NCBI GenBank assembly: GCA_977017575.1
Contig: CDRNVI010000043.1
Coordinates: forward strand, 496,001-560,000
Direction of reading: 5' to 3'
DNA: 64,000 bases
DNA from: Paramoeba atlantica
Lineage: Eukaryota; Protista; Discosea
The notes beneath the pieces were generated by a model, which saw nothing but the letters and a program-made list of their open reading frames with translations, was not told the origin of the DNA and did not search any database. Of this stretch, positions 17,317 through 55,559 are shown one piece after another (the first letter of the stretch is position 1; every line of letters starts with the position of its first letter). Made by a program: the position numbers and the translations under genes.

Positions 17317-17450
17317 AACCGGGGGACGGAATAATATTAAGTTGTTGAAACTTAATAATAACTTGACAACTTAATAGCCTGTCAAACTTAATAATAACTT
17401 GTCAACGTTTTGAAACTTAATATTAACTCGTCGGCGGGTTATTATTAGGT
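17317..17450 (-). mobile_element. Solo right end of the pogo-like family (cf. 53307-55559)
   Basis: TA|AACCGGGGGACGGAATAATATTAAGTTGTTGAAACTTAATAATAAC... is nearly identical to the reverse complement of 55450-55559. Confidence 0.88.
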
Positions 17451-17692
17451 TTTTGATGACTTTTAAGGTGACGTTTATCATTGGAGGGTGTGTAGGCCGT
17501 AGCTGGAGGTTGCTAGCAGTCGCTTGCAGTAACTGGTAATCAATGAGAGCCTCTGGTTGCCACTGGAGGTCAGAATGACTAGAAAACGACTAGAAGTCGC
17601 ACTGGAAAGTCGCTTCTTTCACTCTACCGTCCCTAGCATCGCATTAGCAAAATTACTTATGCATTAACGGTTAAGCATTTTGCTTCATAGCA

Positions 17693-51413: not shown

Positions 51414-51556
51414 TAATGCTGGTTATAAAGATACAGTTTCTGTACCTTGTTGGTACATTTTGCTAGCCCTTCCTTTCTTTTCCCGGAAACGGGCATACAT
51501 TTTCCTTTTAAATGCCCGTTTCCGGCTGACGGCTAGCAGGGACTGTCCCTCTTTTT
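51414..51556 (+). ncRNA. Spliced-leader (mini-exon) RNA-like gene or pseudogene
   Basis: ATAAAGATACAGTTTCTGTACCTTGTTG|GTAC (junction 51452/51453) matches the conserved 3' end of kinetoplastid SL exons plus donor. TGTACC/GGTACA stem-loop I, two downstream stems and a T-tract at 51550-56. The 5' end and Sm-site position are non-canonical. Confidence 0.55.
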
Positions 51557-52427: not shown

Positions 52428-53100
52428 TCAAATCAACAAACCTTGAATCACATCCCAATCTTCACTCTCTTCTTCAGAGTCATCTTCTGTCTCTTCATTG
52501 TCGTTGTCTTCGTCCCTTTCTACTTCTTCCCTTTCCACTTCATCTTTTACGGACTTCAGAGCCAACAAAAGAGCGCAGAAGCGTTCTTGCCAGCTTGCAT
52601 TCTTAAAAAACAGCGTGTGCAATGAAACAACTTCATCAGCCTTATGCGGATGCATTGAGAGTCTTCCTTGCTTTCGTATTCCCCTCTTTACAGAAGAGTG
52701 GCACGACTCGGCATTGTTCGTATGTATTCCCTCCTTTGTAACAAAACGATATTTACCTTTTGTGCTATGGTTCACGACTCGATGATCTCTTACGGCATTT
52801 AATCCACGGTACGCCCGCCAAGCATCTGTGTTTACGATCGTGCGGTAGCTGTCCACTGCGTGCTTTTTCACAAAATTTTGTAAAGTAGTCCTGTCCCTTT
52901 TTTCAACGCGCTTCCATATAGTACGGCCACAACTACCATCTCTTTCGATCCCAGTAATTGTAGCCATGTAAAAAGATCTGTTTCTCACTCGGCATCCCCG
53001 ATGATACTTCCGTGGAAAGAGATAGGTTTCATCAACTGCGCACCTAGAGAACTTGATTTCCTCGTTGCGTTTCAGTACGGCTTTATGAATAAGAACATGT
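52428..53100 (-). mobile_element. Merlin (IS1595/ISXO2-like) transposase, 5'-truncated or start-less
   Basis: The frame stays open upstream of the listed ORF: AVDETYLFPRKYHRGCRV; RDRTTLQNFVKKH; VNTDAWRAYRGL; HRVVNHS; GIHTNNAESCHSSVKR. Termini were not identified. Confidence 0.88.
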
Positions 53101-53255
53101 AGAATGAGGAAAAAAAAACGTTTTGTTGTATGATTTATGTGTTTTGAACGTGAGATTACTCGAATGCCAAAGGAATTATTTCAAAAGCTCACATGATGCA
53201 AAATTTATACCCCCCGACTTTTTGATGACTCTCCTGCATATCCTATGTTTGAAGT

Positions 53256-53296
53256 GGGTCCGTGGGTCCGGGACCCGGGTCCGGACCCAAGGACCC
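53256..53296. repeat. Palindromic cluster of six GGGTCC/GGACCC hexamers
   Basis: GGGTCCgtGGGTCCgGGACCCGGGTCCGGACCCaaGGACCC, 10 bp before the pogo left end. Confidence 0.8.
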
Positions 53297-53306
53297 AAAA
53301 AAGGTA

Positions 53307-55559
53307 AACCGGGGGACGGAATAATATTAAGATGCGGTTTATTATTAAGTTGCGGTTTATTATTAAGTTAGACAAGTTATTATTAAGCTAGACAGGTTAT
53401 TATTAAGCTGGACAAGTTATTATTAAGTTGTCAAGTTATTATTAAGTTTGTGTTTTTCGATGGGAGAAGGAGATTTTTTCGCCGAAAGTTTGACCCTTCA
53501 TAGATTGGCTCAGGCAGAGTGTGACCCAACCTACGTTCAGGAAAACGATGAGATTATGTCCCTTGAGGATGATGAAGGGGTAGAAATGCTTGATGACTCG
53601 TCGGACGTAATTGGTAGCGGAAGCGATGGAGAAAGTGAAAGTGCTAGCGAGAGCGAAAGTGAAAGCAATTGTGAAAGCGAATGTGAAAGTGTGAATTCAA
53701 GCGAAGAAGAAATAGGATATAATGTTGAAAGTGCGAGCGAAAGTAAAATTAAGAGTAATTCAACTTCGGATGATGAAGATAACGGAGCGGAGCTGACTGT
53801 TGGAGGGAAAGACAAGAACGAGCGCAAAAAACAACATTGCGTAGTATATACGGGGCGTCATATAGACCAGGGTGTGCGCGGTCGAGTGGAACCCACGGCT
53901 AGACAAAAGCGTGTAATATATGAGAAGTGGATTTCCTGGTCGCAACAAGATCGAGATGCTTATGGATCACTCCGCAAGTTAAACTCTTGGATCGACAAGC
54001 GATTCCCTAAGAAACGTGTCCACATTTTTAACAAAAAGCAAGTTATGGCATACTCTAAAATTCCTAGGCATAGTCAAAAGCGTAAAAGGCATGTAAAGGG
54101 GCATAAACTGAAATGGTTAAAACAACAATTGCATTATTTTATTCTTGGAGCTCGAGAGAACGATGCTTTGATAACAACCGAGATGGTGCGCCAAGAGGCA
54201 TTTCGCATGCTGAAAAAGGAAAACCGCAAATCACCAGAGCAGAACAAAGCACGGGGAATTACAAGAGTAAGCGAACGTTGGATAGGGAGATTCCTCCACT
54301 CTTACAAATGGTCTATAAGATTAGTAAAGAGATCAACTCAGCTATCAAGTGAAGAGATAAATAAAAGAATTCATTCCTTTCATACGTTTGCCTATCGTTG
54401 TCTTAAAACAAAAAAGTTTCGTTCCGTTCTGAATTTTGATGAAATTCCCATATCATTTCGCGGGTCCATGAAATCTTTAAAAACAATTGCGCAGCGAGGA
54501 GAAGAAGATGTACGAGGGCGTTGCAATCCGAATGATATGAAGCGATGCGCAACGCTTATCTGCGGTGCTGGCGTGAAACTGGATAAAAATGGAAGTCCAA
54601 CGAGTCATTTCTTTCTAAAACCTTTTATCGTGTGGAAAGGAGCTGGAAAAGGATCTAGTCACGAGATATTTGATGCAAGGACGGCTCGAGCTTTTACTCC
54701 GAAAGGTGTCGTGAACAAAGATTTTTTTCTCCAAGACTTTATTCCCTTTCTCAAACGTGAACTGGATATAAATGACGCAGGCCACACTTTAATTTATCTA
54801 GACTCCTGCCGATCTCACATAACAAGTGACGTTCTCGATGCGTTTGCCACTGTGGCTAACTGCTATTGTGCCATATTACCCCCTGCAACAACATCCTGGA
54901 TCCAATGGATTGATGTATTTTATGCTTCTTCGTACAAACGCGAGCAAGTAAACATTTGGCACAGAGAACAACATATCCGTCGGACCGCCCGCCAAAAAAG
55001 ACAATGGATGCATAATGCCGTTGCCCGAGCGCACGAACAAGTTATAAATCTCGACAACGACTCTCTTGATGAATCAGGGACCCTTTCCTCTTCTATGAAC
55101 GTTGTTCAACAATTCAAAAGCTTGGGGTATATCGACCCTTGTGATGCATCGTGGTCGCATGTGAAATGTTTAGAAGGATATGTCTTTGTTACACCAAGCG
55201 ATGACGATGAGAGAGACGAAGCTAAGAGAATCGAAGATGCCTTTTGAGCGTGGGAAAAGCGTCCAGGCACGAAAATCATTCCAAGGACGGCTCGATAAAT
55301 GGTGTAACCCACGACGCTCCACCGAATAAAGGTAAAGAAAAGAAAGATTTATGAAGTTTATGAAGTCGGGTAAAGATTCAGATAAAAAAAATATTGTTAA
55401 AGATTGTATACATAAAAAAACAATTTGTTAATTTTATTACAAACTTAATAATAACCCGCCGACAAGTTAATATTAAGTTTCAAAACGTTGACAGGTTATT
55501 ATTAAGTTGTCAAGTTATTATTAAGTTTCAACAACTTAATATTATTACGTCCCCCGGTT
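53307..55559 (+). mobile_element. pogo-like (Tc1/mariner superfamily) DNA transposon, 2253 bp, apparently intact
   Basis: TA|AACCGGGGGACG(G/T)AATAATATTAAG TIRs with TA on both sides, subterminal arrays of TTATTATTAAG, and a single uninterrupted transposase ORF. Confidence 0.92.
53460..55247 (+). CDS. pogo-like DDD transposase (Tc5/CENP-B HTH + DDE_1), DD36D
   Basis: LKQQLHYFILGARENDALITTEMVRQEA...VSERWIGRFLHSY (HTH); NFDEIP, YLDSCRSH and LPPATTSWIQWIDV, with 36 residues between D2 and D3. Acidic S/E-rich N-terminus. Confidence 0.9.
   Translation: MGEGDFFAESLTLHRLAQAECDPTYVQENDEIMSLEDDEGVEMLDDSSDVIGSGSDGESESASESESESNCESECESVNSSEEEIGYNVESASESKIKSNSTSDDEDNGAELTVGGKDKNERKKQHCVVYTGRHIDQGVRGRVEPTARQKRVIYEKWISWSQQDRDAYGSLRKLNSWIDKRFPKKRVHIFNKKQVMAYSKIPRHSQKRKRHVKGHKLKWLKQQLHYFILGARENDALITTEMVRQEAFRMLKKENRKSPEQNKARGITRVSERWIGRFLHSYKWSIRLVKRSTQLSSEEINKRIHSFHTFAYRCLKTKKFRSVLNFDEIPISFRGSMKSLKTIAQRGEEDVRGRCNPNDMKRCATLICGAGVKLDKNGSPTSHFFLKPFIVWKGAGKGSSHEIFDARTARAFTPKGVVNKDFFLQDFIPFLKRELDINDAGHTLIYLDSCRSHITSDVLDAFATVANCYCAILPPATTSWIQWIDVFYASSYKREQVNIWHREQHIRRTARQKRQWMHNAVARAHEQVINLDNDSLDESGTLSSSMNVVQQFKSLGYIDPCDASWSHVKCLEGYVFVTPSDDDERDEAKRIEDAF

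Follow-up and report, generated by a model that had tools for sequence, protein, structure and literature searches.

A divergent, probably autonomous-type pogo transposon and its decayed family in a genome with spliced-leader-type motifs

The question raised by this locus is whether an element with matching inverted ends and one long open frame is an intact pogo-like transposon, and whether it could still be moving. The element spans 2,253 bp at positions 53307-55559 of the window, by which we mean the whole 64,000-nucleotide stretch analysed (Paramoeba atlantica assembly GCA_977017575.1, contig CDRNVI010000043.1, positions 496,001 to 560,000); the window contig is called C43 below, and coordinates without a contig or locus prefix are those of the window. 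An earlier note, made from the letters alone, had described the element as an apparently intact and potentially active pogo-like transposon. We find that it is very probably an autonomous-type pogo cut-and-paste transposon, whose family would have spread in a burst near the time of haplotype divergence and would have decayed neutrally since.

Matched terminal inverted repeats (TIRs) and a TA duplication had been claimed for this element, and both were found. The two 25-bp TIRs differ at one place, position 13, and a TA lies on either side. The TIR pattern occurs three times in the window and in none of 100 shuffles, and genome-wide (45.7-Mb assembly, up to 2 mismatches) it was found 38 times compared with 0 for the reversed control; among the loci retrieved, a TA adjoins nearly all of the family ends. 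Inside the TIRs lie arrays of an 11-bp motif, TTATTATTAAG, of which the window has 11 exact copies where 0.04 would be expected, so that this part of the earlier description also stood. The right array is of mixed orientation and is therefore not a mirror image of the left, the two ends being differently built. These subterminal arrays are probable binding sites of the transposase. The GC content of the element is similar to that of the surrounding DNA. The parts of the element, from left to right, are:

53305-53306, no strand: left copy of the TA target-site duplication, read directly
53307-53331, plus strand: left TIR, 25 bp, with the same form at 22 termini in the genome
53339-53446, plus strand: left subterminal array of six exact direct copies of TTATTATTAAG at 18-20 bp spacing, stopping 13 bp before the ATG
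ATG at 53460 to stop at 55245-55247, plus strand: transposase open reading frame (ORF), 595 aa plus stop, identified from the open frame, a transitive Pfam link, the fold and the profile search
55444-55525, mixed orientation: right subterminal array, with motif copies at 55444 (minus), 55467 (plus, 1 mismatch), 55496 and 55515 (both plus)
55535-55559, minus strand: right TIR, 25 bp, with G to T at position 13, a change found only in the C43 copy and its allele on contig C19
55560-55561, no strand: right copy of the TA target-site duplication, read directly

Directly upstream of the left TA, at 53255-53297, there is also a GC-rich palindrome of GGGTCC/GGACCC units with 17-bp arms that are 94% complementary.

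The ORF is uninterrupted and carries three aspartates in DD36D spacing, D327, D448 and D485, in agreement with the earlier note. The acidic serine- and glutamate-rich N-terminal extension described there was recovered as well, and alignments show similar acidic N-termini in sister families and in relatives outside this genome. The regions of the protein are:

53460-53885, plus strand: acidic Ser/Glu-rich N-terminal extension, residues 1-142, predicted to be disordered (predicted local distance difference test, pLDDT, below 50)
53898-54302, plus strand: bipartite helix-turn-helix (HTH) region of two three-helix bundles, about residues 147-181 and 218-281, from predicted secondary structure
54417-55049, plus strand: RNase-H-like catalytic core, residues ~320-530, from the triad, the AlphaFold model and Foldseek
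54438-54440, 54801-54803 and 54912-54914, plus strand: codons of the DD36D triad, D327, D448 and D485 respectively

The gap between D448 and D485 is 36 residues and that between D327 and D448 about 120. All three aspartates are invariant in 58 of 58 aligned relatives, as are H453, T478 and Q482. In an AlphaFold model built on 12 paralogue sequences, D327 is part of a strand, while D448 and D485 are placed at the end of a strand and the start of a helix, respectively; the core reaches pLDDT 70-90, and the model also has a long linker helix besides the HTH bundles and the RNase-H-like core.

The link from this protein to the pogo superfamily runs through its relatives. A word-based homologue search gave two matches for the window protein (97% and 47% relatives) and four for its paralogue L061, so that an exhaustive profile search was needed. 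With 11 family members as the query against 1.84 billion representatives, this search returned 4,838 matches at E ≤1e-3, 86 of them at E ≤1e-30, and Pfam domains are present in most of the aligned relatives (DDE_1 in 44 of 58, HTH_Tnp_Tc5 in 42 of 58). Within the genome itself there are many diverged paralogues with 25-55% identity to the window protein. One of these, L061, is matched by the window protein at E 3e-26 with 25% identity and lies above the Pfam cut-offs for both DDE_1 (23.5 bits vs 22) and HTH_Tnp_Tc5 (25.6 vs 22.2); HTH_Tnp_Tc5 is above its cut-off also in the paralogues L044, L063 and L062. The second helical bundle of the window protein (218-281) is the counterpart of this matched domain. 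The HTH named in the earlier note thus stands in the model and through the paralogues, but not as a Pfam domain of the window protein itself.

Structural comparison points the same way. Foldseek against the PDB placed the Mos1 transpososomes first (E 4e-6), followed by the Sleeping Beauty and Metnase catalytic domains. In the ESM Atlas the nearest clusters carry DDE_1 and HTH_Tnp_Tc5 (score 0.96), the top clusters being commonest in Oomycota. A 12-sequence profile searched against solved structures returned nothing significant, CENP-B reaching only E 0.45. A DDE_1-type DDD core and a CENP-B/Tc5-type HTH (via the paralogues) are thus found together with TIRs and a TA duplication, and on sequence and modelled fold the assignment of the window protein to the pogo superfamily of the IS630-Tc1-mariner (ITm) group is well supported.

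With this assignment, the element would work by the steps that are standard for the superfamily, from which we infer DNA binding, catalysis and any present activity. The transposase would bind the 25-bp TIRs and the repeated 11-12-bp subterminal motif via its bipartite HTH and would pair the two ends. The D327/D448/D485 triad of the RNase-H-like core would then cut and rejoin the DNA, with insertion at a TA that is duplicated in the process.

Compared with the pogo superfamily as surveyed by Gao et al. 2020 (PMC7386202: Tigger, pogoR, Lemi, Mover, Passer, Fot), the element shares the TA duplication, short TIRs, a length of ~2.3 kb, and a single ORF with an N-terminal bipartite HTH (of Tc5/CENP-B type in the paralogues) and a DDE_1-type DDD core; the spacing of its last two aspartates is within the reported range. 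It is unlike the superfamily in that its protein has diverged beyond the reach of Pfam DDE_1 and HTH_Tnp_Tc5 and has an acidic disordered N-terminus of ~140 residues, in its six to seven tandem motif copies at the left end with a set of mixed orientation at the right, and in its Euglenozoan host. Ordinary pogo matches in our tree have ~101-115 residues between the first two aspartates, compared with ~120 in the window protein. The Mos1 mariner transposase (PDB 4U7B, 3HOS, 5HOO) is the best structural match at probability 1.00, with an alignment spanning both the DNA-binding and catalytic parts, and shares the DDD chemistry and the TA target. However, the two are only 12-14% identical, and Mos1 is a DD34D protein of 345 aa without the acidic extension and without subterminal arrays.

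The position of the element within pogo was assessed in a maximum-likelihood tree made of profile-search matches alone, without labelled Tc1/mariner, Zator or Mover references. A 26-row clade (Shimodaira-Hasegawa-like approximate likelihood-ratio test, SH-aLRT, 99) holds the families of this genome; its members are proteins of 411-890 aa, most of them 530-890, in which ~113-129 residues separate the first aspartate from the second and 34-36 the second from the third. Its only named entries are a cluster of Diplonema papillatum 'hypothetical proteins' and one transcript filed under Colponema vietnamica. In the remainder of the tree, ordinary pogo proteins of ~400-500 aa, including a POGK-like mite protein, form a starred core of 28 rows. 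Four longer rows (559-584 aa), which include an Adineta CENPB-type protein and a Bryopsis protein, branch outside this core.

The Diplonema papillatum proteins (KAJ9459291.1, DIPPA_29905; P0010 cluster) group with the window protein in a starred subclade of 15 rows (SH-aLRT 99). They are 626 aa long, have the invariant DDD triad and occur as many near-identical copies in the genome of a host from the sister group of kinetoplastids. In contrast to the window protein they are DD35D, only ~27% identical to it and annotated as hypothetical. Among transposon-like ORFs, the Diplonema genome paper mentions TATE, MULE and Helitron, and the word pogo does not occur in it (PMC10161547). The related transcript filed under Colponema vietnamica (P0030) encodes 814 aa. 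Colponema vietnamica is a predator cultured on bodonid prey, and this transcript may derive from contamination by the kinetoplastid prey.

Based on its DD36D spacing, the element could be assigned to the Mover family of pogo, and the earlier note was correct that Mover is DD36D (PMC7386202). Mover, known from Chondrus crispus and Chromista, shares several further traits with it: no DNA-binding domain by hmmscan, a TA duplication, elements of 2.0-2.6 kb and a transposase of up to 595 aa. Mover also occurs in stramenopiles, and Oomycota is the group most frequent in the top ESM Atlas clusters. In the tree, however, only the window family and its sister L044 are DD36D within the 26-row clade, whereas the nearest relatives are DD35D and the L061 family of the same genome is DD34D. 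The spacing has therefore changed within the clade, and DD36D alone cannot place the element in Mover. The ends differ too, since Mover TIRs start CACC(C/G), as all Mover rows of Table S1 do, and those of the window element start AACCGGGGG (AACCG). DDE_1 is detectable by hmmscan in those same Mover rows, whereas a hmmscan-type check of the window protein shows neither DDE_1 nor HTH and its paralogues give weak HTH_Tnp_Tc5. Mover is described as uniformly DD36D, without a detectable DNA-binding domain, and from red algae and Chromista only (PMC7386202). Membership in Mover is thus quite improbable.

At least four sister pogo families were found in the same genome. One of them is at L044:894-3180 (C87:178006-180292; allele L045), a 2.29-kb element with TA-flanked ends that start ACCCGGGGTGCGG and an intact, coding-competent 588-aa DD36D frame, whose identity to the window protein is 39% over the full length and 46% over the tree columns. 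Another, at L061:1147-2766 (C87:327646-329265), is more distant and has an intact 540-aa DD34D pogo transposase; no other family of this genome reaches the DDE_1 cut-off of Pfam, and C79, C14 and C73 carry related copies that are broken.

We found full or partial copies of the window family on C43, C19, C16, C87, C38, C24, C11, C52, C8, C72 and C39. In four pairs (C43/C19, C87/C38, C24/C11 and C52/C8) the flanks are collinear and 97.6-99.8% identical. Paired copies share their flanks and therefore represent one insertion on homologous contigs, which leaves seven independent loci. By their sequence identity the paired contigs are probably haplotigs, that is, both haplotypes of the genome. Collinear contig pairs were also seen for C16/C29 and C39/C40, and repeat copy counts in this genome are inflated about two-fold.

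Substitution distances between independent loci are 1.1-1.9% and star-like, and those between paired contigs are 0.1-1.1%. Private changes pooled over one copy per locus comprise 48 non-synonymous and 13 synonymous changes, close to the neutral expectation of 20.8% synonymous (p 0.51); the ratio matches neutrality, which implies decay of the copies in the absence of selection. The open frame is kept only at C43/C19, and the other six of the seven loci are broken. The broken copies are:

C16: stop codon and deletions
C87/C38: interrupted by an inverted-repeat element of 1.55 kb
C24/C11: interrupted by a tRNA-like insert of 380 bp with a flanking 30-bp duplication
C52/C8 and C39: internal deletions
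C72: truncated

Two of these interruptions are of interest in their own right. The nested element of ~1.55 kb (L004:3233-4732 with L016:1-1500; C87:194893-196440; also on C38) has long inverted ends that start CAGGGGGGG and holds Tc1/mariner-looking ORF pieces, and a second ITm-type family therefore appears to be present in the genome. The 380-bp insert (L006:3180-3559 on C24; also on C11) has a tRNA-like start, and 30 bp of the pogo sequence are duplicated on either side of it; it resembles a retroposon of the short interspersed nuclear element (SINE) type with an unusually long target duplication.

The earlier note had proposed that the family was mobilised, and had named copy identity and insertion polymorphism as checks. 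Mobilisation is borne out by the seven TA-flanked loci, by the deletion derivatives and by two insertions that the homologous contig lacks. C29 carries matches of 99% identity to the C16 flanks, separated by a single TA, which is an empty site, and the divergence between C16 and C29 is 0.9%. The flanks of the internally deleted C39 insertion are matched on C40 at 97-98% identity; one match stops at 618990 and the other begins at 618987, which leaves two bases in between. At the other four loci with paired contigs the element is on both. For the insertion in the window itself no empty site was found, since its immediate flanks are confined to C43 and C19 and the element is present on each, and the flank of the C72 copy is part of another repeat. 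With two of the seven insertions missing from their homologous contigs, movement of the family is dated to about when the contigs diverged. There is no near-identical pair of loci, and so nothing points to very recent movement. The history would accordingly be one star-like burst of at least seven insertions, about when the two homologous genome copies diverged, with neutral decay afterwards.

This timing bears on whether the element is active now, with the C43 copy or its C19 allele supplying transposase and the family still transposing in living populations. An active transposon would show insertion polymorphism, together with near-identical copies at different loci or new insertions. Insertion polymorphism was found (C16 vs C29; C39 vs C40), and the internally deleted C39 copy at one of the polymorphic sites is consistent with mobilisation in trans. 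Near-identical copies were not seen among the loci compared, where the minimum distance is 1.1%, although active families normally have such copies, and most of the loci are broken as listed above.

The state of the two alleles is mixed in the same way. The C43 copy keeps its frame open, as does the C19 allele, and every invariant or nearly invariant residue of the 58 relatives is retained; its left end is perfect and its right end has one mismatch. To this extent 'intact' was an apt description, but the copy also bears private damage, of which one feature is:

55242-55245, plus strand: T run with one extra T, private to C43, causing a frameshift into the stop at 55245-55247

The frameshift removes a 25-residue tail that is present in the C19 allele (620 aa), in the database relative P0001 and in other family copies. 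The conserved I-x-D-x-F motif is kept in C43, and because L061 and P0005 end soon after this motif the missing tail may be dispensable. The right end, besides its mutated TIR, has lost one 20-bp repeat unit relative to other copies. Compared with the majority of the other loci, four amino-acid replacements are private to C43 (P134H, N200K, K301N and P578T), and at the position of P578T most aligned relatives have proline. The C19 allele keeps the tail but has been shortened by two in-frame deletions, and in its second HTH the change I275T affects a conserved hydrophobic position. With every conserved residue kept, the C43 copy could encode a functional enzyme. Nevertheless, the description 'potentially active' is unproven with loci so far apart and copies that behave neutrally, the sequences give no sign of ongoing transposition of the family, and we consider present activity unlikely.

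The two alleles also bear on domestication, that is, on whether the locus is a transposase gene kept by the host. It is the sole locus with an open frame, which is open in both alleles, and the ratio of non-synonymous to synonymous polymorphism (pN/pS) between them is 0.53. However, the underlying 12 non-synonymous and 6 synonymous changes do not depart from neutrality (p 0.15), and the element has diverged between C43 and C19 (1.07%) about as much as its flanks (1.45%). The change between alleles is neutral-like, and the open frame is therefore read as a chance survivor and not a selected gene; the same figures argue against an active element. In addition, the TIRs, repeat arrays and TA duplication are all retained, other copies of the family are polymorphic insertions, and the locus lies within a 17-kb transposon field outside the gene array. 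A single conserved, syntenic locus had been given beforehand as the sign of domestication, and this was not found because the family has many loci. We reject domestication as very improbable, on account of the intact ends and the neutral-like change between alleles.

Several observations weigh against our interpretation of the element as a pogo transposon with a burst near haplotype divergence. The window protein itself had no match in a Pfam scan even at E 1 and none in a sequence search of solved structures; pogo membership is therefore transitive and structural. The AlphaFold model, drawn from 12 sequences, has a mean pLDDT of 63 and is of moderate overall quality. The contig pairs could be large recent duplications, the haplotype reading being drawn from identity. 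In the case of C40, the two bases between the flanks were counted from coordinates with the letters themselves unread.

Around the element, the window holds a one-strand array of 22 long ORFs, including those for Hsp70, Mlh1, a TFIIB-repeat protein and a U3-associated protein. The element sits beyond this array, among transposon remnants. A spliced-leader-type sequence is present at 51433-51459 (ACAGTTTCTGTAC...TTG then GTA), and the corresponding motif (ACAGTTTCTGTACCTTGTTG then GTA) occurs 243 times compared with 0 for the control, dispersed on many contigs with no single tandem array. A leader of this type fits a kinetoplastid or diplonemid host, and the 45.7-Mb size of the genome suits a kinetoplastid better than does the ~280 Mb of Diplonema (PMC10161547). 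Speculatively, the motif of the left array, which is T-rich and ends in AG, might act as the acceptor for the leader. An Rfam scan of the whole window gave no match at gathering thresholds.

These surroundings bear on whether the element comes from a contaminant or prey organism, or is an artefact of assembly. The assembly does have paired near-identical contigs, which might suggest an artefact. Yet the element is on the same contig as the housekeeping-type array, 7 kb from it, and 1.9 kb from a copy of the dispersed spliced-leader-type motif, family copies lie on many large contigs, and the GC content is like that of the surroundings. Such an origin is scarcely credible.

Two further pieces of pogo-type sequence lie in the window, both cited in the earlier note as signs of mobilisation:

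17317-17452, minus strand: solo right-end fragment, 136 bp with ~85% identity, from the window family or a close relative of it, TA-flanked and also present on C19
59296-59428, no strand: 133-bp miniature inverted-repeat transposable element (MITE) of a sister pogo family, which has only the terminal AACCGGGGG-CGGA in common with the window element and differs from it in the internal repeat

The solo end is real. The second was taken for a derivative of the window element, which we reject, as only the first ~13 terminal bases are shared and the internal motif is different. Its ends are nearer to those of the sister families L044 and L052/L067, which vary the same core.

A fragment of a Merlin-type transposase lies ~320 bp upstream of the element, as a 186-aa ORF at 52428-52988 on the minus strand that matches PF12762 (ISXO2-like/IS1595) at E 4e-11. 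The homology between C43 and C19 stops upstream of window position ~52791 (L001:985), and another insertion or deletion difference between the two contigs therefore lies inside this Merlin-like fragment.

Merlin relics in Bodo saltans and Perkinsela were reported as the first DNA transposons in kinetoplastids (Lopes et al. 2021, PMC8101967), and in the literature searched they are the only ones reported from this group. They are of the same Merlin/IS1595 type as the fragment beside the window element. They belong to a different superfamily from the window family and were judged immobile, lacking inverted ends and target duplications, whereas the window family has both as well as insertion polymorphism. 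In a 2025 survey of 57 trypanosomatids, no DNA transposons were found (PMC12278014). Fot-like elements have been described in one Excavata species by Gao et al. 2020 (PMC7386202), and the part of their supplement text that was available does not mention Bodo, Diplonema or Naegleria. We found no paper on pogo elements in Euglenozoa in the literature searched. What is new is a pogo-type family in a host group where such elements are undescribed; otherwise it is an ordinary though divergent pogo element. A bolder proposal is that of an undescribed, Euglenozoa-centred pogo clade, marked by a long acidic N-terminus, spacings of ~120 and 34-36 residues and multi-copy subterminal repeats, in which the C43/C19 locus still encodes a working transposase; taken as a whole, we offer this only tentatively and think it doubtful.

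In conclusion, a pogo family with full ends, TA duplications, deletion derivatives and one-sided insertions shows past cut-and-paste mobility in this branch of the Euglenozoa. Close relatives occur in Diplonema and sister families in the same genome, and such past mobility supports a loss of these elements in trypanosomatids over their original absence. If the transposase does work, mobility of a native cut-and-paste transposon would have been demonstrated for the first time in a kinetoplastid-type organism, within a group thought to be without such elements. The open frame would then offer a native transposon tool, and a candidate for insertional mutagenesis, in organisms with polycistronic and trans-spliced genes.

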